From Eutreptiella sp. 'Long Island Sound 2002' (taxonomy: Eukaryota > Protista > Euglenida), in NCBI GenBank assembly GCA_964036045.1, contig OZ038378.1:180606001-180670000 (forward strand): 64,000 nucleotides of DNA. The letters are read 5' to 3'. Made by a program: the position numbers and the translations under genes. How positions within the stretch are numbered: position 1 is the first letter of the stretch; each line of letters begins with the position of its first letter. Below are positions 1 through 50,612 of the stretch, in pieces. The notes beneath the pieces are model-generated. The model saw only the letters and a list, made by a program, of their open reading frames with translations. It had not been told where the DNA came from and did no database searches.

Positions 1-70
1 AACCGACCCACAGGCAACACCACAGGCTTAGAAACAAGGACAGACACGTCAAACTGTACAGCTACGTACA

Positions 71-1292: not shown

Positions 1293-2367
1293 ACGGACTA
1301 GTTCCCCAGTAGTGCCAAGGGGTGCTGCACAGCGGCAACCTAGGCTAGCAATTCACCGAGGCAACATACCCAACCCACCTAAACCCCAAGCCCCACCGAA
1401 ACCCGGGCCCAAGTCAGCTCGTGGGCCAGCTAATCGTCCGTCACGGACACACCCGCCGAAATGACCGGCATCCGACATCTCCGATTTCCTCGAGATGCGA
1501 AGGAAAAGGATGCGTTCTTAGATTTACGGCGCTCGCGAGCGCCGTAAAAAAAAAGAACGTGTTTGAGGGAAAAAAACCAGAGCCGCTAGTTCTGATGGAT
1601 CAGCGCCAACCCTGGTTTGCTTCAGGGGACTACAAAATGCCCCAAAAGACAGGCTATACCAGAACAAAACCACAAACATCACAAGCAATAAACTGTTACC
1701 AAATAGGTGTCTACCATGAATAGTCCCCGTTGAACATGTCACCTATTGGCCCACGCCAATGTGACTCCCTGTTGCCCATGTCTCCCGGCTCCAGTTAGTG
1801 GACTCAGGGTCCGATGTGCATCTTGTTGTTATTGTTATTGTCTTGGCCACACGACACCACGGCGCCCCGCTCACCCTACCGCCACGAGAGACGGAGTAGG
1901 GGTGGATCTCCTTTGGAATCGGCCAAATACCCTTGCCTAGGGTCTGGGGTGTGTGCTTTCGCGACCACTTACAGAGAAAGCCCCTGCTCAACCCCTGCAA
2001 GCACTGTGGCCGGACCATGATTGCGAAGCCACATGGGGACCACAAGGGCCACGAGGGTTGTTGCCTAATGTGGGGGATGGAGCCGACCCTGTCCTTGGTT
2101 TGCGCAGTTGGGCTGTTTTTCCCACCCAGCGGAAACACTCGCCCAGCAGGTTTCTACTTTTTACCATACCCACAACTCGCTAGCATCACATGGTACCGGC
2201 GAGTTGCATTCCATCCAGCTCCAAGGTGATCCCAAAGGTATCCCCAAGGTGTCCCCAAGGTGTCCCCAAGTTGTTGACAGGGCCCAAGGGGCCACATGGT
2301 CCCAATGGTTGACGGCCTCACCTTCAACATTTCAATACACAGGCGCAAAGGGTTTTTTCGTTAATCC

Positions 2368-2794
<427 letters not shown>

Positions 2795-2796
<2 letters not shown>

Positions 2797-2992
2797 CTGG
2801 TACCACTGCGGGCGCCCCCAGCTGTCCTGCCCTTGTTACGGGTGGTTGAACTGGGGGGCGTCGTTACGCAGTGGTTTACCGTCAGCCCACCCCTGAGTGG
2901 CTCCAGGAGGTGGTGGGGCAGCCCCAGGTAGCGCCTTGTTGATGGGCTGCCGGTTTCAGGGGTGTGCGTCTGGTGTCTGTGGCGCCTGAAAC
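2795..2992 (+). ncRNA. Structured 5' terminal RNA module (tandem hairpins) of the retroelement
   Basis: Long imperfect hairpin at 2795-2883 (ACCACTGCG/CGCAGTGGT; GGCGCCCCCAG/CTGGGGGGCGTC), then perfect 8-bp stems GGCAGCCC/GGGCTGCC and GTTTCAGG/CCTGAAAC. Confidence 0.5.
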
Positions 2993-3808
2993 TGCTGGTG
3001 AGCTACGGTGGTGGAGTGGTTAGTTTTCATGGGTTCAGTTGGTGTTCGTTGGTGCACCAGGTTGGGGAAGGGGACCGGGCTGGTGCCCCCGCCCCCCCCC
3101 CCTTCTGAGAGGGACAGGGAGCAGCCCCCCCCCCCCCCCCAGTCTGAGCAGGGTGCGGGGTGTGTGCTGTGTTTGTGCGAAGTGTTGGTATCTGCTTTGC
3201 ATGCGTGCCTGCCCCTTGTCTGCTTTAACAGGCCATCAGGCCGTTACGTGGGCGTGGGATCACGATGCGGCTCCCGGGACCGGGGGCTGTGGGGATGGTG
3301 CTGCCAATCGATGGGCAGCAGCACTCTGGTATGGCCTGTGCAGGGCATTGGGAGGGGCAGATCGAGGGGTTGTGAGAGCAGTGGGTGGTGCAGGGCAGGA
3401 GAGCTGGCTAGGGGTTTGAGGCGGGGGTCGAGCCAGGGGCGGCACTGAAGTAGGGGCACGGGGGGGGCGACGGGGCTGACAGTCGTCATGGAAGCAGGTT
3501 CGCGGCAAGTGGTCAGGAGGCGTTTGGGACGCTACACTGTTTATTGCTCTGCAGGCTCCCAAGGCCGGGGGCTGACGTTGGGTACTGTGCGTGCTGGGTA
3601 TCCGGGAATGGAGCTTCTGGCGTCCAATCCAGTGGGTGCCGGGTCCAGTACATGGCCAGGGCATGCGAGATCTGGATCGAAAGGTGGCGCTGAGAGTCAT
3701 CTCCTTCAATGCCGTGTTATTCTGGTTTGAGATACTTTGTTTGCAGATATCGACTTTCTTACAGGTTTGTGTGCTGTACTTCTGTCGGGGTCGACAATGT
3801 GGAGACGT

Positions 3809-3846
3809 GTAGAGGCCATGGATCGGCGTAGAGGCCATGGATCGGC
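3809..3846 (+). repeat. Perfect 19-bp tandem duplication immediately before the array
   Basis: GTAGAGGCCATGGATCGGC at 3809-3827 and 3828-3846. Confidence 0.95.
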
Positions 3847-4229
3847 GCGCCTGGTTAAAGGGCTGTGCTTTAAAGAGAGGCGCAGCAGGATTTGTCACTT
3901 CTGGTTAAAGGGAGCGATGTAGCTAGGGCTTGAGCTGTGTACATGCCTGGTTAAAAGGCGGCGTGTTTATTTGTGCATTAAGCCAGAGTGCCTGGTTAAA
4001 GGGCAGGAACGTTTCAGACGTTCTGGCATTCATGGTGCCAGTACCCCTGGTTAAAGGGGGTGCAGAGAACGGGCCAGAGTCTCGCCGTGTGCCTGGTTAA
4101 AGGGCGGCGACTTCGAGGAATGTCGTATCAGCATGCCTGGTTAAAGGGCTGAGGGGACTTGTGAGCACGTGGTTCTGGACACGAGGGGGTGGCATATGAG
4201 CCAGGTGGCTAGAGTGTCTGGTTAAAGGA
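3846..4229 (+). repeat. CRISPR-like short repeat / unique spacer array (not a canonical CRISPR)
   Basis: Core CTGGTTAAAGGG (extended consensus roughly TGCCTGGTTAAAGGGC) starts at 3851, 3901, 3947, 3992, 4047, 4093, 4137 and 4218. Spacers of 38, 34, 33, 43, 34, 32 and 69 nt are mutually unrelated. Degenerate units lie near 4175 and 4276. Confidence 0.9.
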
Positions 4230-4318
4230 CAACCTAGTGCAGGAGCGCGTGCATGAGCGAACAGCGGGCGTACTCCTGGTAGTGTAGAATTAGCACCTGC
4301 CTGTACTCCGCTCCGCAG

Positions 4319-7150
4319 ATGCCTTCGGTTACCGCAGCAGATTTCAAGAAGTTGTCGGCGGCTAACAAGAGGCAGCAGCTGAACGGGGCAGACATCTGGC
4401 CGGTGGAGACGGTGGCTCGAGGCAAAGACAAGGAGATCTTGATGTCGGCCGTGCACAAACCGTCGGGTGAAACGGTCATCTCTGTTCCAGTCGAGGAGAA
4501 GCAGCTGCATTCGGCCGCGGTCTGGTGGTTCTATTTTACTAGTGAAGGCACTAATGTACAGAGGACTTATCTCCTGGAGAAATATCCTGATACTATGGTC
4601 TGGTCGGTATTCGCGCTGATGGCAGACCTCTCGCGACAACTCGAGGATGTCTCGACGATCGACGAAGCTGGCAACTGGCAGGCAAGTGTCATCAGTCAGG
4701 TGGACGACATGGATCTTCAGTCGTCCTTGTCCAACCTCACGCTGGAGGATTTCGTGGGGACTTTAGATGGCTCAGTGATCAAGCTTTCCCCTACCGTCGA
4801 CGTTATTCACTTATGGTACGCGGCAAGCTGCAAATTGGCGGCCGACAACAAGACGCGAATGTTGGTCAAGTTGCACTCCGACACTAGTGGTGACAAGGGC
4901 ATGGGGAAGGTACTCCGGCCGTCCCCATTGTCTCAAAATGACATGCTGAGCTACTTGCGGACCATCCGCAAGAAGACATGGAGGCAATTGCAGCTGCCGG
5001 ACACAGTGGTCACATCTGCGCAACCTGTGGTGTCGTGGAAGTCCCTGATGAAGGAATCCAAAGTGGCAGGGCAAGACAGCGACAAGCCGATGACGGAGAA
5101 GCTGCAGATTCTGCTTGCCATTCCGCACAGGGCCGCGGTGCAGCGGGCAGTGGCGTCACTGCAAGTCCTGATGGGCAAGCGGCTTGATAGGCAGCTCGAT
5201 GCTCTGCTGGCCAAGAGCAAAGATGCAGAGGGTCTTCTCTCGATCATGACCAAGTTCTGGAGCAAGAAGACGCCTTTGGAGCAGGGGGAGATAGAGGAGG
5301 ATCTGGGCCAGTGGATAGCGGCTGTGCGAGACTTGTGGGGAGATACGGGCGCGGTCAAGAGCAGGAGGGAGACATTGGAGCGCATCGAGAAGGCTATGCA
5401 GAAATTCGTGGAGATGCAGCAAGCAGCGGGCAAGGACTTGAATTGGTCAGACTTTGCGCAAGAAGGAGCCATGGAGTTAACCAACCACGAGGACGACGAA
5501 TTCGGGCACCTCATGGACTTGCTGTTGGACTTCCGAGAGGAGAAATCTGCGCCAGGGTCGGAGGCGCAGGAACGGGCGCTGAGGACCATGTTGGTCAAGG
5601 CAGTGGGAAAATGCACCCTCGGGGAGCGCAGGAAGGAGCTCGCGGACGCTTTCGACCAGGTGGTGGGGAATGCAGCGGACACGAAAAAGGCCGCTGAAAG
5701 TTTCTTGTCTAACAGGGTAGGAGCGCCAGTGGGATCGGTGGAGTTGCCTGATGGCTGTGTCAGGGTCGCTACACAGGATGTCCGCAGAGTGGTCAAACTG
5801 ACGTGGAGTACAACCGAGGACGCGACGAGGCAGGACATAGAAGGTCTGGCCAGCAAACTTCTGGGGCTACCAGTGGTACTGAGTGACAAATTACAGAGAG
5901 TGGCCTGGGGTCTCGCAAGGATTCCGCAAGCACAGTTGGATATGTTGTTGGGGACGTCCGACGCGAGAGCATTTCTTACCGACAACAAGAAGGTTGAAAT
6001 AGAGGTCCGAGTTCGCACGGAGGGAGCCAAAGAGCCCTACTTCCTGGAGGTGGGGCACTGGACAAATCTGGCAGCAGGAGACACAGACGTGGTGAGGAAA
6101 AGGCCTCTGGCTGAAGTACCAGTGGGGGTGGAGGCCCAGCGCACCAAGGTGGCGCGGCAAGGAAAAGGGGGCAACCCTCGCTCGGACAGGCCGTCCACTG
6201 GTTTCTCGGCAAGGTACGACCGATGGGACAGGCCCAAGGATCACTCCTTCGTCCGTATGGATGGCAGGTACGGGGGCAAAGGCGTAGGGGCGCAGGGTAG
6301 ATTTTGACTACCAGTCCATGTACCTCCAACGGCTGTGGTGTCGGGGCCTATGGTTGGGCTTATGCGACACTTGGAGAAGTCAATGGTCAGCCCGCACGAC
6401 TTGGCTGGGAAGATTTGGGGCGCTTGGGCGGCTGAGCTGCAGACATGGCTGGTTGCAGGAGGTGTGGAAGTGAATTACTCTGAGATGGGATTCCAGGTGT
6501 GTTGGACCTATGGGCAGGTTCAAGGGTCGGATGGCGGAGATTTTCGGTGTGCGGCATGTGAGGAACGTGGAGGGTTGCGCCTGGGGATACCTCGGGTGGA
6601 GGAATTCTCACTGCCAGACGCGGTTCAGGCCGTCTTTGGAGAGTACCTGAGCCTCTGGTCTGCGGCCATTCGACGCGAACTACTGGTCCAATTTGTGCAG
6701 TTCGTTACACCACTGGGGAATGTGAGGGGCCGTATCAAACGACGGACGTGGGTCACGGTTCTGATTTTGTTGCCGTCATCCACACTGATTGCGACTCACG
6801 AAGGCCACCATCGTTGTGCACCGTTGCCACCGCACACGGCTTGGGAGTCTCCTGGACAGTGGATATTGAAAGGGGACATTTGTGGGCTCTGTGGCAGGTT
6901 CGTGGCGCATTCGGCAGTTGTGCTGCGGCCAGGGACGTCGCCTCTTGGACTGTGTACTGGTCGTCAGCCCCAGAGCGCGCTGGTGAAGAGGGAATGGTCT
7001 CAGCGTTCGTCGCTGGGCTGCGGCTCCATCAGTCTTCGTGGGGGGGTTCCGATTCAGCGACAAAAGGACACGGAGCCCCCGGATCTGAGTCTTCCAGAGG
7101 ATGAGGATGGAGCTTGCGCAGCGTGGGTTCGGCAGTTCGCGCCCCACTAG
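4319..7150 (+). pseudogene. N-terminal (Gag/ORF1-like) part of the polyprotein: novel helical region, possible RRM-like segment, Arg/Gly-rich linker, Cys/His finger
   Basis: The 662-aa ORF 4319-6307 continues in the same frame through TGA 6305-6307 into 6308-7150 (CAAC, HHRC...W...CGLC). Domain names are inferred. Confidence 0.7.
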
Positions 7151-7960
7151 CCGGAGCGTTATGACACGGATGAGAAGACCTCTGACATCGACTTCTTGGT
7201 GTTGCAGGTGGGTGGGGGATGCGCGAAAGCGGAGGCAATAGAGGACTGGATACAAGGGCTTAGTCCTTCCGTTGTGGTGATGCAGGAGTTGTGGGATTTG
7301 GAGCTGGAGGATCACTCGTGGCCCCATAAGTATTGGGTCCGTGAGGGAGTTAAGGGGCAAGGGCTTGGATTGGCAGTGCTGCTGGCGCGCCATCTGGTGG
7401 CACCTGGAGGCCGAATGTGGCGCATCTACGACGATGAGTCAGCCCTGGTGGTGGCGTTTGACTCAGTTTCGGGGTCAATTTGGGCAGTGGGGTCCGTCCA
7501 TCTGCGGCCCGGAGACTCTTTTACTGAGAAACAAGCCGTATTGAAAGGAGTGGTCTTGTCCTTGAAAGTCGTGGGGGCAGATACCGCGTTTCCTGGAGGG
7601 GATTTCAACTGTTCATACCATAAGGAGCACTCACCGTTGCGCAGGTTTGCTGAAGGGAATTTGGAATGGAGTAGACTTGGGATGAGCTATGTTGGTGAGA
7701 TGACGGATGTGACCAACGAGGTCCCTCAGCGCGGGGGCATATCCCGAACATCCATAGACCACCCGTTCGTCTCGGGGGTCCTCGGGGAGGCAAGCGAGCG
7801 CCACCTTCTGCCGGGCATATGCTCGCACAAGGCCCAGCTGGTGGTCAGCAGAGTGCGAGGATTTTTTCGTGGGCCATTTGGCTGGAAGCGATACTCTTGG
7901 CGCCGCGTGGGGGATCAAGACAAAAGGCAGCTGATGGACTCCATGGAGGTGTTTTGGTTT
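7151..7960 (+). pseudogene. Apurinic/apyrimidinic endonuclease (EEP superfamily) domain
   Basis: Motifs VVVMQE, SVHL, GGDFN, SIDH and CSH occur in canonical order, in the same frame as 4319 after TAG 7148-7150. Confidence 0.9.
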
Positions 7961-9845
7961 CTGGGCGGCGGTAGCTGGGGCAGGGCCGGATGCGTACCTC
8001 GGAGTTTACCACCATGTTGCAGATCAGTTAGTTCACCGAGATCCAAAAACAGTGCGGGAGCAGTTCTTGAAGCGGCTGCGGGACGATGAGGACTCCGTGG
8101 GTATGGTGGCCGCTAACCGTAGGATGCTGGCAGTCCAGGCTGAGCTGCGTGAAATGGGGGTCAAAGAAGACGCACGGGAGGAGGGTCGCAGTGTGGGGAT
8201 CACGTCACCCACGAAGACGAGTATGAAAATCAGCAAGGCAGCTCTAGTTATGTTCGGGGGCATCAAGGCGCACGAGGAAGATTAGTATTTGGGGATGGAT
8301 CAGGCATTGCAGGAGATCAGCGAGCAGGCCACTGAGAACAATCGTTACAGGGGAGAATTGCTCGACATGGAGGCCCTGCAAGCGTCTTACCAGGTACCTG
8401 CAGATGTGTGGCGCTGCTTGGACGAGCTGCCAGATGACCTGTGGATCCGGATGCTGGAGCGAGGATTGGATCCTGATGCGCATGAGGATCGCATGGTAAT
8501 GGCAAAGGTCATAAAACGGGAAGGCCACAAGGTCATGCGGCGATTAAATTAGGCCCCGGCCAGGAGGATGACTGACGCCACGTTTGTGGATCTGGTGCCC
8601 TCATCTCAGCTTGAAGCCGGAGGCATGGTGGCAAGGAACGTCATGTTGAGCATCATGAGAGACCTGCACAGGGGGTCCCTCTCCTTGTTCAACGCGGTAG
8701 CTCATTACGGGATCAAGAAAAAGCCTCCATTCACGCTGATGAGTGGATACAGGCACATCTTCGTGGAGACGTCGCTGTCGCGTGTCGACTCTGCAGGCAT
8801 GCATATGGTGCTGAGCGAGGCGTCCAAGCTGAGCGGTCTCTGGGGGCCCAACCTGTTCTCGTACAGGAAGGGTTTCAGCCCGGCAATCATGGCTATTGTT
8901 CTCCGGAGGAGTGTGTACAAGGTGCTGAGTTTGTGGGGGCAGACTTGGATTCTGGACTGGGACGAGACAGGCGCGTTCCCGAAGCTTCAATTGGGGAATT
9001 TGGACCAATTACTTTCGTTGGCGGCGGAGGCAGATGACGAGCAGTCGACGTTACAGGGCGTCCGGGACGCCTACTGGATGGCTGAAGGAGACGTAGATGC
9101 TTTCTACCGCAGGCAGCGCATATACCCGGTTACAGCATACGGCTTGGGTCGACCTTACTCGGCAGAAGATGGCATGCTGGAGGGCGATTCAGCGGCCCCT
9201 ACGGTATATCAAACGGCAGGGGCAGTCGGAACTTCGTGCACTACAGTCGAGGGAGCAGTTCGCTTCAGCGGACCGCACGGTGCAGTGGCGCTCAGTGAGT
9301 TTGTGTTCAGTGACGATCGCCGCCTCATACACCACAAGAAGCATTTGTTTGAAGAATTGGTGGAAGAAAGGGTTCGCACCACCAAGGCAGCGGGGGGCAT
9401 GGTCAATCCCACCAAACTGGAGCTGTTCCACGTCGTCGACACTGAAGGAGAACTGGAGCTCAGGCAGTCGGAAGCGAACGTGGGCGTACATATGACAGGG
9501 TCTCTATCGCCTCCAACATGCATAGGCGTCCCCATTCTCCTCGGGGTACGGCCGGAAGCATGGATAGCGCGAACGGAGGAGATGTGGGGTCGAATGATCG
9601 GGCGGCTCGGAGCAGCTCACTTCGTCCCCATCAAGAACATCAGAGTAGTCATGGCTTTCATGGTGGCCAGGCTGGACTATGTGTCATCGGCTTTTGTATT
9701 TGGGGAAAACTGGCTGGTGGACCTGCAGAAGTTGGTCGACAAATCCTTCTGCGACCTGCACGGTCTGTCCATGCGCACAGCGAAACTGTTCTTGTACCTG
9801 CCGTTGGAGCACGGTGGAGGGGGATGCCCATGGCTCCCGATATGA
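7961..9845 (+). pseudogene. Non-LTR reverse transcriptase domain
   Basis: After a frameshift near 7960 one frame runs through stops at 8283-8285 and 8550-8552. Motifs: N*AP (KAPG-like), GFSP, LDWDETGAF (DxxKAF), GMLEGDSAAP (GxxQGxxLSP), FVFSDD (YxDD), VNPTK, CIGVPI. Confidence 0.92.
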
Positions 9846-11404
9846 GGGCACATCAGGTATCTGCGCACAGTGTTGGGGTTGCCGCACAGTCGCAGCGGTC
9901 TGAGACGACTGGTGGTGGCAGAAATTCTGAACAGGGAGACCCCAGGAGAGGATGTAGCACGACTTTGGGAGCTGCTGAAGGCATATGGCATCCACGTGTG
10001 CACGTCTCGGGGAGACGGCGTAGGTCTGATCAGCCCGGGGCTGGGGTCAGACGAGGAGCCGTGGCTGCTGGTGAGTGACGGAGGTTTGCGCGGTCATCGC
10101 AGAGGTGTGGGGCTGGTGCTGGCACGGCACGGGACGATCGTGGCGGTGAGGGGATACGGCTTGTTGGTGCATGCTGGTAGTTCGACGATGATGGAATGGA
10201 TTGCTAAAGCACTCCTCCTGCTGGTCACAGCACATCTCACCGGGAAGCGCATCCTGGTGGCGGACTCAGCAGCGGGGGCGTTTACGGGGGCGTCCCTGCC
10301 CCATTACCACACATGGGTGGACGCGTTGGCGAAGAAGGCACTGAAATCCATCAATTTGGAGGAGTATTCTGAGGGATGGGTCCAGGCAAAACACGACAAT
10401 GGGATGAAGGAGTTCCTGGCCCTGTGCAACGAGCACGCGGATTTTGTGGCGACAGAGCAGTCGTTGGCGGCTCAGGTTGGTCCATTCCCTATTCAGGAAC
10501 AGTGGGCGTCGGGGCCAATTTTGCAGGTGGACGGAAGGTATGTGGTAGACCCGGATGCATCGCTTGATAAGCTGTACGACGACGCCATGGTCCACAGGGC
10601 AGCCCAGGGGCTTCACGGATGGAGCGGTGAATGGTCAAGTTACGATCACGTACGGGCCGTGAAAGGTGGAGAGGTGAGCAGGGAGTCTCATCGCATGCTG
10701 ATGCTCCTGCGAGTGCTGGGAACGTGGCCGCGTTGGACAAGGTTCTGGACTGGGAGTTGGACGGGACGTCGGACTTGGAGGCCTTGTTTCGTCAAGGAGA
10801 GAAGCGTCTGTGGGTGTCAGTACAGCCGGACGGAGAGCTGCAGGACTACCTGCGTATCAAAGCAGGCGACGAGATCATGCTATGCAGCTGGTCGGGAAGA
10901 TATTTTACTTCAGGGCCTCTTCGTAATTCTTGGGGAGGGTGCCCGGTGCCGATGGCGGATATTTTTCAGTCGTGGGACTGCTCGAAGACCGTGGACCTGG
11001 AGACAGTACAGGGCCTGTTTTCTACTGGCCACAGGACCTGGGATCATGGGCAGCACCCCAGGGTAGTGACTACTGAGGGCCTGCCAGCCTCCTTGCTCGA
11101 GGCAGTGACTGTCGCTTGGCTGGTTCGCGGATGCACCAGCTGGCAAGTGTATATGAGCAGTCCATTGTTGGTGGACCTGCCGACTCAGCAAACGGCTGCT
11201 GATGACGTTCCCTGCACCCTGTACTGCGGGGCGTCTGCCATCTCTTTTCCTGCAGGATCCCCTTATATTGTCCGAGTAGGTGAGCAGGATCAGGTTCAGG
11301 ATCTGGATTTCGAGTATTATGGGTCCCAGTGTCCTTTTCGCATGACAGTGGGACTGCCGTGGGCAGCGCGGAAGGAGCTGGCTCCGCTGGCGCGTATCAG
11401 ATGA
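9846..11404 (+). pseudogene. RNase H domain and C-terminal extension of the polyprotein
   Basis: Same frame as RT after TGA 9843-9845. LVSDGG, STMMEW, LVADS, WVQAKHD and NEHAD give the D-E-D-D catalytic set. A frameshift near 10720 leads into the 10631-11404 frame. Confidence 0.85.
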
Positions 11405-11499
11405 TGTCGAGTTCTTCAACACGACTTCAGGTCTGCATTGCCTGTGCCAGTGCCAATGCAGAGGCTCTGGAGCCGACGCCAGAGCCAGAGCCGGCGGCA

Positions 11500-11829
11500 G
11501 TGCATTAATTTATTTGATTGCCAATCTGAAAAAACTGCACTGAGCTGCACGGATGAGCAGCTGACTGCAGATTTTGTATCGCAGCCTGTCGTTGTTGGAA
11601 TCAGTGCAGGGTGTTTGTGGAGAGCCAGGTAGGGAAAGGGGACCGGTGGAACAGTTTTTTTTTTTTCAGAAAAACAAAAAAAAACATATTACCATTCAGC
11701 AGCAAGCAACTCATACGACGGAAGCAGTGGTACTGGCAGAGCTATCGAGAAATGGGGGCGCATGGTGAGAACGTATACCGCAAAATTCAGCATGCACACA
11801 AGTCGGGGTGGGGGGGGGGTGCATTAATT
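11500..11829. mobile_element. Candidate ~308-bp nested insertion flanked by an 11-bp direct repeat
   Basis: GTGCATTAATT at 11500-11510 and 11819-11829. The interior contains a T-run followed by an A-run near 11654-11683. Confidence 0.4.
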
Positions 11830-12041
11830 AAGAGGTGGAGCACATGGTGGAGGCCAGCGCGGAGGTTCAGGCCGGCTCTGCTGCCTACTAGGCGTGAGAG
11901 GGGGATCCCTGCGGCTGGTGGTGGGGCGATCGGGGGTGGGTCTGATAATGGCCCGCCTCTTGAACACAGTGACCTACCGGGACGTCCAGTGGTAGGCTCA
12001 GGCTAAGGCCTGGTGCGTCCGCAAGCATGAAGCATGAAGCA

Positions 12042-13987
<1,946 letters not shown>

Positions 13988-14228
13988 AAAATTGTTGACC
14001 ACTGAATCTGTCTGGGAGCCCAGAAATTAGGGGTTCTGGACAACAGCGTGCCACATACACATGCAACTTCAAGAACTAAGGACCATATGTCGTGCCTTCA
14101 ATGCTATCGCTCACGCACCATTTGCGAAACACAGCACAACAAAGTGGTTGAGTGTGAGTCCTCGTCAGGTGGGTCGTCAAACAACAAGCAAATTCACACA
14201 TCCCCCCTACGCGGGCGTACACATACAC

Positions 14229-23508: not shown

Positions 23509-24170
23509 ACTCCCTAACTCCAACTCGAGGGGCCACACAACAAAGCGTGCATTGTGAGTCCCTAACCCCAACTCGAGGGGCCACGCAAAAAAGCGTGGAT
23601 TGTGAGTCCCTAACCCCACCTCGAGGGGCTACGCAACAAAGCGAGGAGAGTTCTTGACCCCAACTCGAGGGGCCACGCAACACAACGTGGATTGTGAGTA
23701 CCTAACACCCACTCGAGGGGCTACGCAACAAAGCGAAGATTGTGAGTCCCTAACCCCAACTCGAGGGGCCACACAACAAAGCGTGCATTGTGAGTCCCAA
23801 ACCCCAACTCGAGGGGCTACGCAACAAAGCGAAGATTGTGAGTCCCTAACCCCAACTCGAGGTGCCACGCAAAAAAGCGTGGATTGTGAGTACCTAACCC
23901 CAACTCGAGGGGCTACGCAACAAAGCGTCCATTGTGAGTCCCTAACTCCAACTCGAGGGGCCACACAACAAAGCGTGGATTGTGAGTCCCTAACTCCAAC
24001 TCAAGGGGCCACGCAACAAATCGTGGATTGTGAGTCCCTAACCCCAACTCGAGGGGCCATGCAACAAAGCGTGGATTGTGAGTCCCTCACCGCGACTCGA
24101 GGGGCCACGCAAAAAGGGTGTGGATTCAAAGCCCCGACCCCAACTCAAGGGGCCACGCAACAAATCGTGG
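23509..24170 (+). repeat. 48-bp tandem satellite, ~14 copies, most units containing CCCTAA
   Basis: Unit TCCCTAACCCCAACTCGAGGGGCYACGCAACAAAGCGWRGATTGTGAG. The 16-aa periodicity in the overlapping ORFs confirms 48 bp. Confidence 0.95.
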
Positions 24171-26319: not shown

Positions 26320-27240
26320 GGCCTAAGAAATCAGGCCTTGGGAGTGTCTTTTTAAAACCTTTGCATCGGGATTTAGGCCTTGGGACTTTCTTCTTACAAC
26401 CATGGCCTGAGGAGTCACGCCCTGGAATTTTCTTCTGGAGACCTTGGCCTCGGGAGCCAGGCGTTGAGATATTCTGCTTAAAACCTTGGCATCAGAAATC
26501 AGACCTTGGGATTTTCTTCACAAAACCTTGGCCTCAAGAGTCAAGCCTTTGGAGTATCTTCTTAAAACCTTGGCCTTGATAGTAAGGACTTGGGACTTTC
26601 TTCTCACAACGGTGGCCTGCAGAGTCATGCCCAAGGACTTTTTTCTCAAAACCTTGGCCTTAGGAGTCAAGCGGTGGGATTTTATCTTTATATCTTGGCC
26701 TTGAGAGTGAGGCCCTGGGGTTTTTTTCTTAAGACCTTGGCGTACGAAGTCCAGCCCTAAGCTTTTCTTCTTAAAACATTGGCCTCAAGAGTCAGGCCCT
26801 GGGACTTTCTTCTTAACACCTTGGCATCAACATTGAGGTCCTAAGATTTTGTTCTTAAAAACTTGGCCCTAGGACTCAAGCCTTGGGACTTTCTCCTTAA
26901 AACCTTGGCCTCAGGAGTCACACCGTGAGATTTTCTTCTCAAAACCTTGACTTCAGGTCAACCGGTGGGACTTTCTTCTTAAGGCCTTGGGATTATCTTC
27001 GGAAGACGTAGGCCTCAGCTATCAAGCCGTGGGGTTTTCTTCTTAAAACCTTCACCTCAAGAGTCAGGCCTCGGGATTTTCTTCTTGAAACCTTGGCCAA
27101 AGGAGCCACGCTTGGGACTTTCTTCTTAAAACCTTGCCCTGAGGAGTCATGCCCTGGGACTTTCTTCTTAAAATGTTGTTCTCAGGAGTCAAGGCTTGGG
27201 ACTTTCTTATGAAAATCTTGACCTCAAGGGCCAAGCCTTG
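26320..27240 (+). repeat. ~42-bp degenerate tandem satellite, ~22 copies
   Basis: Consensus about CTTGGCCTCAGGAGTCAGGCCCTGGGACTTTCTTCTTAAAAC, with an internal GGCCT...AGGCC stem. Confidence 0.9.
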
Positions 27241-48900: not shown

Positions 48901-50314
48901 GGTGCAAGACGCGCACAGTGCAAGTGCCCCTCCTTTGTTGCAAACATCCGGCGCCACACACCGGAAGAAAAGTTTTCACATGCACAAAAAAAATTTACTT
49001 GCTTTGCTTGCAGGCATTGATTTCACCAGGGTTGTGGGTCGTTGTGCAACCCAACCGTTGTGCAAGGGAGGGCACACTACTGCTCAGTTGCCTAAGCATT
49101 GGACTTGCACCGAACTGCCCATGAGCCAACACAAGGCAACATCCCAAGCAAATGAGCAAGCAAGCACAGCACTTTCTGCATCACTTTCATTAAATGCTGT
49201 GACTATTCGGCTTGTCCAAAAGGGTCAGCGACCTTCTCACCCCCTGCCCAACCCTCTCCGACCCTGCGCAGTTCCTTCTGAAAATCACCACAGCTCCGGT
49301 GCGTGGCACGAAAGTGGCCCTGTCTAATTCTTTGGGCTGACCTTCTGTGTTGTACGAAGTATTGATCCTGTTCTAAGGTACCCAGGTAGAACCTAAATGA
49401 TATACACACCAAGATTTAGTAGTAGGGCTGTCACCCTGAGGTGAGAGTCCATTTGCGGGCTATTGCCCTGGCCTTTCGCAAATATATGCATGACCCAGTA
49501 CAGCTGAGCAGCAGTGTTCACTGAGCAGACCTTCTACACTCAATTGACAGACCCGTTGCATGGGCCACAATTGCAGCGTGGCAAATAGCACTGCGGTTTA
49601 TACAAAGAATTACATATAAGTAGAAATATATGGAGCACGACCAAGACTTAGAGGGAGTGTTTGCCCTGCGCGCGCCCTACACGCTACTTTTATGATGACT
49701 TTGGACTTTCCCCGATTGAGTCCCCAAGTTTACTATTACCATATGGAGCCCCGGAGTAGACCAATAGCTGCCTCTTGCCTACCAAATAAAGCAACAAACC
49801 ATCCATGCACAACATTGAACAAGAAAAGCAAATCTGAATCACCTTCACAACTTTGTTCCACCAAGTTTGTTCGCTCACGTTGAACGCAGGGGATGGTGGG
49901 GGTGAGTCCCAACTAGGGATACCAAAGGAGATGGCATCCATGGGGCAACGACCCACACCCCATCTTGATGATATTCCAACTCCACATAACCTTCGTCGGA
50001 ACGGCCAACCACCTTCGCGGGAACACGAAGTCCAGTCGACCTAGTGTAAAACACCTTGTCCCCAATGTCCAAGTTCATATCAAATGTCAAAAGAGGTCTA
50101 AGGACGCAAGCAGCAAAAATTGATCTCCCGCAGCAAACACGCTGAATGTATCACCATATTACCAACTTAGCGTGCCCGTTTCACAATGCACATGGACACA
50201 TACACACAACGCAACGAAACACAGCCCAGGATAACGCAACATCACACAACGCAACGCCAAAAGTGTAACAAAGATTGTCCCGGTTTCCTCAATAGCACCG
50301 GAAGGTTGGGGCCC

Positions 50315-50612
50315 AAAAGAGGGCAGAAATGCTACGCCATCCCTGCATTCTCAGGGATCCCGAAACAAAAGGGGACAAAATCAGAATTGGCTGCCTCACC
50401 CCTACCTTCTTGGGGGCCCAAAAGCGGGTGGAAATGCTATGTCACCCCTGCATCCTCGGGGGTCCCCAAACAAAGGGGGACAACATTAGAAGTAGCTGCC
50501 TCAACCCTACCTTCTCGGGGGCCCAAATGAGGGCGGAAATGCTACGTCACCCCTGCATTCTCGAGGGTCCCCTACAAAGGGGACAAAATCAGAATTGGCT
50601 GCCTCACCCATA
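50315..50612 (+). repeat. Tandem copies of the same satellite family as 24405-24790
   Basis: Repeated GGCTGCCTCACCCC / GAAATGCTACGTCACCCCTGCATTCTC / GGGGACAAAATCAGAA. Confidence 0.85.

Follow-up and report, generated by a model that had tools for sequence, protein, structure and literature searches.

A retrotransposon leader in the 64-kb stretch of Eutreptiella DNA analyzed here (the window) carries an array in which short constant repeats alternate with 32-43-nt spacers of differing sequence, the units lying 44-55 nt apart except at one 81-nt gap. Comparison with related elements in the same genome suggests that this is an old, diverged array of ~46-nt head-to-tail monomers, and covariation among the units and their relatives supports a base-paired core. 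The interpretation that we favor, and to which we give about an even chance of being right, is that a worn-down 46-nt repeat furnishes the sense RNA with a row of stem-loops that most likely serves as a multivalent platform for protein. A preliminary description of the window had read the same layout as a CRISPR-like recorder in a eukaryote; this striking but wrong claim is replaced here by a concrete and testable one about a LINE hairpin array.

Organization of the array and its host retrotransposon

The array resides in what its homologies define as a ~9.25-kb non-LTR (LINE) retrotransposon (positions 2796-12041) that interrupts a (GT)n/(TG)n microsatellite. The 5′ end was assigned from homology to a paralog on another chromosome (the C3 paralog) and to a short non-autonomous element, and the 3′ end from homology to the latter; in each case the homology directly abuts (TG)n. 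The features of the insertion are as follows.

2395-2795, no strand: (GT)n microsatellite, 5′ flank and target site (TRF)
2796-3008, + strand: conserved 5′-terminal LINE segment, ~210 nt
3009-3842, + strand: variable middle of the 5′ UTR
3843-4236, + strand: eight-unit array (core matches, unit alignment and stem pairing)
3848-3864, 3898-3914, 3944-3960 and 3989-4005, + strand: hairpin cores (5-nt arm + GGTTAAA + 5-nt arm)
4044-4060, 4090-4106, 4134-4150 and 4215-4231, + strand: further hairpin cores of the same composition
4169-4190, + strand: degenerate unit in the 81-nt gap, with TTCTGG kept and the loop lost (unit alignment, C3 counterpart)
4266-4290, + strand: last unit, degenerate, CCTGGTAGTG... 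(unit alignment, C3 counterpart)
4319-6307, + strand: ORF1, 662 aa, intact and closed by a stop, with 94% protein identity to the C3 paralog
6308-11404, + strand: ORF2-like region, broken up by stops and a single shift of frame
11819-12041, + strand: conserved 3′-terminal LINE segment, ending in (AAGCATG)3, with 86% identity to the short element at its 3′ end
12042-13987, no strand: (TG)n microsatellite, 3′ flank (TRF)

The final third of the 1.5-kb 5′ UTR contains the array, which begins ~1,050 nt from the 5′ end of the element and ends 28-90 nt before the ORF1 ATG (4319). Its earlier placement in the leader of a reverse-transcriptase element is correct in that it lies within the 5′ UTR, but not at the 5′ end of the element, which starts at ~2796. 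Similarly, the APE-RT-RNase H polyprotein that had been said to start after the array is borne out in part. APE and RT are encoded downstream on the array strand, but the frame that opens at 4319 is the 662-aa ORF1, in which no Pfam domain was found, and RNase H has no Pfam support in the ORF2-like region. The APE endonuclease (7196-8089) passes the Pfam cut-off (Exo_endo_phos, E 4.9e-6); the divergent reverse transcriptase (8568-9845) falls short of it (RVT_1, E 0.007), and its atlas look-alikes are RT clusters. Neither RT nor APE matched PDB sequences in phmmer searches, and the database homologues of the element are few and without names. ORF1 and the APE region share one reading frame with stops between them at 6305-6307 and 7148-7150, the first of which may be the natural ORF1 stop (with read-through or re-initiation) or a product of decay.

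The (GT)n/(TG)n microsatellite also immediately precedes both the C3 paralog and the short non-autonomous element. Moreover, the window copy, the C3 paralog and several copies of the short element all lie in (TG)n and start and end at common element bases. Independent insertions with one microsatellite on both sides, together with the APE and RT domains, indicate that the element is a microsatellite-targeting APE-type LINE.

Its 5′-terminal segment is ~89% identical to the C3 paralog (2796-3006, in a match that also includes some flanking (TG)n) and 85% identical to the short element (2796-3008), and over 2796-3008 the summed contig depth is 20-50x the value elsewhere in the LINE. The segment is conserved and the following 830 nt are not; it is a candidate promoter or processing element, and no Rfam ribozyme matches it at E ≤ 1. 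Between 3009 and 3842, blastn (word size 7) found a poly-C match alone to the C3 paralog. Across 2300-14200 on both strands, Rfam at E ≤ 1 returned no relevant match, and one chance miRNA match inside (GT)n. Two joints appear in read contigs with low support, 3293>3576 (separated by 17 other letters) and 3294>4089; their flanking sides are only 21-24 nt long, and they may represent deleted or rearranged 5′ UTR variants elsewhere in the genome.

Within the array, eight copies of the core CTGGTTAAAGGG (six exact and two with one mismatch) begin at positions 3851, 3901, 3947, 3992, 4047, 4093, 4137 and 4218, all on the + strand. The core-to-core periods of 50, 46, 45, 55, 46, 44 and 81 nt, with a modal period of 44-46, reproduce exactly those first described. 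Outside the array, the 64-kb window holds four scattered matches to CTGGTTAAAGGG with one or two mismatches, compared with 6.2 expected at two or fewer mismatches; because these remaining matches stay within chance expectation, the clustering of the cores lies far beyond it. Alignment of the units reveals a conserved block wider than 12 nt, approximately GTGCCTGGTTAAAGGGCGG, followed by 25-40 nt that differ between units. The near-invariant part measures 12 nt and ~19 nt are conserved per unit. Degenerate units had been suspected near 4175 and 4276; both are plausible, and the C3 paralog has both at matching places. Decay affects the units closest to ORF1. Tandem Repeats Finder made no report of the array.

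The array is non-coding, since stops fall in all three sense frames (5, 11 and 6), in agreement with the earlier view that it is not a protein repeat. Antisense ORFs at 4097-4639 and 3260-3898 overlap the array and have no credible Pfam match, and a coding reading was rejected on either strand. Immediately before the first core lies a perfect 19-bp duplication (GTAGAGGCCATGGATCGGC x2.1, 3809-3847) that is present as a single copy in the C3 paralog. Whole-unit satellites occur elsewhere in the window at 23511-24170 (48 bp x13.8), 26320-27240 (42 bp x16+5) and 50308-50609 (105 bp x2.9).

Spacer divergence and probable monomeric origin of the array

The LINE-type array was found at three places in the 2.28-Gb genome: the window locus, contig C1380 and the C3 paralog. 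The unplaced contig is identical to the window locus at 3641 of 3641 bases (G000 C1380:7191-10831); it probably represents a duplicate or haplotig and not a separate insertion event. Each of the seven good units of the C3 paralog, and each of its two degenerate units, aligns with a single counterpart in the window in the same order, and no unit has been gained or lost. The two copies are 90% identical in the 17-nt cores and 96% identical in the loops (47/49), compared with 63% in the spacers (57% counting gaps). In ORF1, where protein identity is 94%, codon positions 1, 2 and 3 are 94%, 98% and 74% identical, which indicates that both copies descend from lineages under purifying selection. In this comparison the cores thus behave as constrained coding positions do, and the spacers diverge at close to the neutral rate.

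The spacers were also compared with the rest of the genome and with other samples. Three of them were searched genome-wide at up to three mismatches, and matched solely their own locus and the duplicate contig. Across the array, no differences were seen in contigs from two samples of a single study, although these samples may include the source of the assembly itself.

The origin of the array is suggested by its most abundant relatives. A genome search with a pattern of two cores found 697 adjacent core pairs, and the reversed-pattern control found 0. Nearly all of the matches listed lie in a tandem repeat of homogeneous, whole 46-bp units (91% matches, no indels), which carries the array core in the form TCTGGTTAAAGGA and has 3-13 units in those copies that were read. 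The repeat makes up the body of an ORF-less, non-autonomous element of ~1.45 kb, which lies in (TG)n and greatly outnumbers the LINE. From one end to the other, the short element contains the 5′ 210 nt of the LINE, further leader sequence (resembling, by eye, a C3-type copy), the 46-bp monomers (3-13), a 21-bp repeat in four copies and the 3′ 225 nt of the LINE. Two copies were located as follows.

L065:1847-3298 (G000 C2:179551346-179552797) and L065:3743-5194: short element copies, head-to-tail, with (TG)n between them

At L065, the 46-bp hairpin repeat (x10) is followed by the 21-bp repeat GGGCATTGTGCCC (x4), which is itself a small hairpin.

That the partner carries the core as a homogeneous 46-bp whole-unit repeat is the reason for reading the window array as an old monomer array, and the modal period in the window (44-46) equals the monomer length. 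What remains in the window is the core plus weak residual similarity (spacer-spacer z 2.5; 3/8 spacers match the monomer). Specifically, spacers 1, 4 and 5 match the linker of the 46-bp monomer better than shuffled sequences do (p = 0.014, 0.034 and <0.002). The spacers were therefore correctly described as differing, but they are not wholly unrelated, as had been stated, because three match the monomer and their summed pairwise scores exceed those of shuffles.

The monomers at L065:2430-2897 fall into two subtypes (~50:50, often alternating) that differ at three linker sites. The subtypes carry GGTCC and GGACC, which are mutually complementary, so that neighboring linkers could pair to give a 92-nt dimer. 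In the short-element monomers, with edge units removed, variant cells make up 1.1% of the hairpin and 2.0% of the linker (p = 0.008), a sign of weak constraint. The partner's array could be a passively expanded VNTR.

Sister LINE families of this genome have arrays of other sequence in the corresponding part of the leader, immediately ahead of ORF1. A sister LINE whose ORF1 is ~49% identical (L007, minus strand, oriented 748-1450) carries nine whole-unit 79-bp monomers with a 158-bp dimer pattern. These end ~40 nt before ORF1 and contain GCGAC..GTCCTG, which resembles the core of another sister family, inserted in (GA)n (L008:856-1410; also L012 and L020), with 46% identity in ORF1. The last ~600 nt of the 5′ UTR in the (GA)n family holds five to seven irregularly spaced units that keep GCGAC...GTCCTCC around a variable, often self-complementary insert, giving the same look of core plus spacer with other sequence. 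Monomer arrays in these LINE leaders apparently expand as whole units and later decay to a functional core, and the window array offers an example of such decay into the appearance of repeats and spacers.

A covarying stem-loop and its possible functions

The conserved part of each unit consists of a 4-8-bp stem around an invariant GGUUAAA loop, the bases on either side of GGTTAAA being complementary in every unit. Covariation was assessed in 23 cores from four lineages (eight from the window, seven from the C3 paralog, six from a more distant C8 fragment and two from the short element) using a model of 6 bp around a 7-nt loop. In this set 84.8% of cells are paired, compared with 71.0 ± 2.4% in shuffles (0/500 reach the observed value) and 40-60% in slid-partner controls. 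Cells changed on both sides number 21, compared with 7.4 in the control, and the covariation score is 0.442, compared with 0.193 in shuffles (0/500).

Individual pairs exhibit the same pattern. Pair 7:21 is G-C in 14 of the 23 cores, U-A in 3, C-G in 2, A-U in 1 and U·G in 1, and pair 8:20 is C-G in 19, U-A in 3 and U·G in 1. Column 7 departs from G in nine cases, and in eight of these column 21 also departs from C (Fisher p = 1.6e-4). Twenty of the 23 cores close with U·G and the other three with UA; this points to the sense strand as RNA, since U·G pairs there alone. In the short element the stem has seven Watson-Crick or wobble pairs (GCAGTCT/GGACTGC) and the GGTTAAA loop is kept. The folding energy of the array is -189 kcal/mol for the sense strand (z -2.1) versus -133 kcal/mol for the antisense strand (z -1.1), and the MFE folds contain the exact 7-nt-loop hairpin in about half of the units. 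Because the units are paralogs of each other, compensatory events are few; the covariation comes from perhaps four to five independent double changes in a short stem. We conclude that a base-paired core is supported by covariation in the sequences compared.

Two roles suggested by the loop were considered. Its TAA could act as a stop for upstream translation, and falls in all three frames relative to ORF1; this was dismissed as the principal role, given that the ORF-less partner retains the array in amplified form and that upstream ATGs are not conserved. A likeness of GGTTAAA to a Pol III B-box or T-loop was also rejected: the key B-box C is absent and the short element contains T runs.

A mechanism consistent with these features would begin with a ~46-nt monomer array in the 5′ UTR that diverges while selection keeps one short stem-loop per unit. 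The linkers between stem-loops would drift neutrally and come to look like unique spacers. Each unit would be a stem of 4-8 bp, free in sequence, with U·G as its closing pair and presenting an invariant GGUUAAA loop, and a sense RNA with seven to eight such stem-loops upstream of ORF1 would form a multivalent site for a sequence-specific RNA-binding protein. We infer in this way that the array acts as RNA and that a protein binds it. The most plausible candidate for that protein is the ORF1 or ORF2 product of the element itself, which would mark the transcript for RNP assembly.

The partner element gives this mechanism a further dimension. It keeps the LINE termini and the array although it has no ORF, its array has a longer stem and up to 13 copies, and it greatly outnumbers the LINE; these features argue for a cis function other than ORF1 translation. 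As a combination of the two ends of the LINE with an expanded hairpin array, the short element would fit the hijacking of such recognition. We put forward, tentatively and as a proposal that may well prove mistaken, that the GGUUAAA stem-loops are a cis-recognition (packaging) signal for the LINE ORF1 or ORF2 protein and that the short element spreads by means of an amplified copy of it. If so, the array would be a defined, multivalent RNA address label in the 5′ UTR of an APE-type LINE, and the partner a natural case of a parasite that out-competes its LINE by multiplying the signal.

Structure prediction and public reads were examined for further information on these points. AlphaFold2 models of ORF1p from a 10-sequence alignment were unusable (pLDDT 51 over the full length, 40 over the C-terminal domain), and a Foldseek search for fold matches in the PDB returned nothing at E ≤ 0.001. 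One weak Foldseek row, an RRM (E 0.34, prob 0.63), gives a possible lead. Three sequencing runs contain the array stretch, at uniform, genomic-like depth, and none of them is labelled RNA; the stretch was not found in putative RNA runs of the species.

The main rival to an RNA hairpin platform is a DNA-level module, in which the cores would be host transcription-factor sites and the array an internal promoter or enhancer, in the manner of mouse and rat L1 monomers. LINE 5′ UTRs classically contain tandem monomers that carry transcription signals (PMC5381506), and an invariant motif of 11-12 nt is about as long as a transcription-factor site. The LINE and its partner alike have to be transcribed, which would account for the retention of the array in the two elements, and the sister families with other sequences at the matching place recall the rapid turnover of L1 promoters (PMC5381506). 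However, complementarity persists as the arms vary, one position showing four kinds of Watson-Crick pair, which is not predicted for a site in duplex DNA, and the closing T·G of 20/23 cores pairs solely as sense-strand RNA. In addition, the array lies ~1,050 nt downstream of the 5′ end of the element, where the conserved 5′-terminal 210 nt is the better promoter candidate. On balance, a DNA-level module is possible but rather unlikely. The evidence favors one of the alternatives offered in the preliminary description, a multimerized protein-binding or promoter module.

VNTRs expand passively in composite non-autonomous elements, e.g. SVA. The array might on this account be a neutral relic, a decaying old VNTR whose cores owe their conservation to recent gene conversion or chance; the decay of the units nearest ORF1 and the similarity that some spacers retain to the 46-bp monomer would fit. 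We judge this improbable, because in the unit-by-unit orthologous comparison the cores and loops are far better conserved than the spacers and the third codon positions. Conversion between units would also have homogenized the spacers, which are not homogenized, and compensatory changes in the stem are unexpected under neutrality.

It is highly improbable that the array is a small-RNA precursor, from which RNAs of ~45 nt or shorter would be cut at the hairpins to act as guides, primers or silencing triggers. Regularly spaced hairpins could serve as processing sites, but no Rfam family matched at E ≤ 1. Guide production was part of the original headline idea and finds no support here, because the variable parts, which would have to confer specificity, evolve near-neutrally and the three spacers searched have no targets in the genome.

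An acquisition array that records foreign or transposon sequences with polarized gain, for which the superficial layout alone speaks, has practically no chance of being correct, since its spacers recur in unchanged order in the long-diverged C3 paralog, at roughly neutral divergence and without gain or loss of a unit. CRISPR arrays are built from near-identical direct repeats of roughly 23-47 nt. Their spacers are acquired from foreign DNA, differ between lineages and are gained at one end, and the arrays lie next to cas genes in a prokaryotic or viral genome. The window array resembles them in alternating a constant, partly palindromic short repeat with differing spacers of similar length. 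In contrast, its constant part is merely 12-19 nt and the rest of each unit differs; its spacers are orthologous between paralogs and drift neutrally, with no protospacers for the three that were searched and no polarized gain. Its setting is a eukaryotic transposon on chromosomes of ~200 Mb, where the neighbors are LINE ORF1, APE and RT and there are no cas genes. The idea that the spacers are captured sequences also fares poorly in the genome search, which located no source for the three spacers beyond their own locus and the duplicate contig, and in the two samples, where the array does not differ (one possibly being the source of the assembly). Relatives that carry the array as a whole-unit 46-bp repeat point the same way. 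The preliminary description had itself set a decayed tandem repeat with shared spacers against its proposal, and this is the outcome observed, some of the spacers aligning to the 46-bp monomer.

Relation to other retroelements and repeat RNAs

Tandem repeats in LINE 5′ UTRs are well known, both as the L1 monomers of mouse and rat and as duplicated motifs of 70-100 bp in other mammalian L1 elements (PMC5381506). Like these monomers, the units described here, probably head-to-tail copies in origin, lie in the sense-strand 5′ UTR upstream of ORF1, differ between families and vary in number, and a relative of the window element carries whole-unit repeats. However, the units are ~46 nt in length, compared with ~200-650 bp, and in each LINE unit a 17-19-nt stem-loop alone is conserved, with stem covariation that points to RNA. 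Furthermore, mouse L1 monomers form the 5′ end of the element and are joined to ORF1 by a tether, whereas this array abuts ORF1 and begins ~1 kb from the 5′ end.

For the possible working of the array, the best analogy may be the A region of Xist, in which about eight conserved cores are separated by variable spacers (PMC2796953). The two share a set of ~8 short base-pairing cores, variable spacers and, in prospect, a multivalent platform that recruits protein. They differ in that Xist is a lncRNA and the array part of a transposon leader, in sequence and host, which are unrelated, and in the spacers, which are not U-rich here; protein binding, moreover, is for this array something that we infer. 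A precedent for a LINE protein that reads the 5′ part of its own RNA is provided by R2, whose protein recognizes structured RNA near the 5′ end of its transcript, as seen with the 5′ and 3′ protein-binding-motif RNAs (PMC6895275). R2 uses a single structured domain and a restriction-like endonuclease, in contrast to the repeated hairpin array and the APE-type element described here.

Pairs of a LINE and a non-autonomous element with shared termini include ingi/RIME and L1Tc/NARTc (PMC1874656, PMC3383444). As in those pairs, an ORF-less short element has the 5′ and 3′ ends of the autonomous one and is far more abundant than the LINE. The partner described here differs in having an expanded internal hairpin array and a 21-bp repeat, and its shared 5′ end has no Rfam match. 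APE-type LINEs that target microsatellites are also established, among them Mino in (AC)n, Kibi in (TC)n, Koshi in (TTC)n, Waldo in (ACAY)n and Dong in (TAA)n (PMC3812793). Independent copies of the LINE and its partner are similarly flanked by (TG)n, and the sister family lies in (GA)n. A difference is that the RT and APE described here match Pfam weakly and match no solved structure by sequence. A non-exhaustive look at descriptions of these five elements found no hairpin array.

Tandem repeats in LINE 5′ UTRs, LINEs that target microsatellites and LINE/partner pairs that share termini are therefore already known. The unusual features of the present element are the shortness of the unit, the reduction of units to a selected, covarying stem-loop, the adjacency to ORF1 and the amplification of the array in the partner. 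To our knowledge, it is mainly in a few models that the choice of RNA by APE-type LINE proteins, in cis-preference and in the trans mobilization of partners, is well defined. For binding and mobilization experiments, a short hairpin that is repeated and covarying and has natural variants of its loop and stem would be a convenient handle.

A further relative, the LINE at L067:5334-16998 (ENA assembly ERZ25074135), which is 56% identical in RT, also lies between (GT)n tracts, and no GGTTAAA cores were found in it. Adjoining it is a short element in (TG)n with a 41-bp x6 repeat that forms a different hairpin, with a 7-bp stem (CTAGCCA/TGGCTAG), and with 15 copies of the 21-bp repeat GGGCATTGCGCC.
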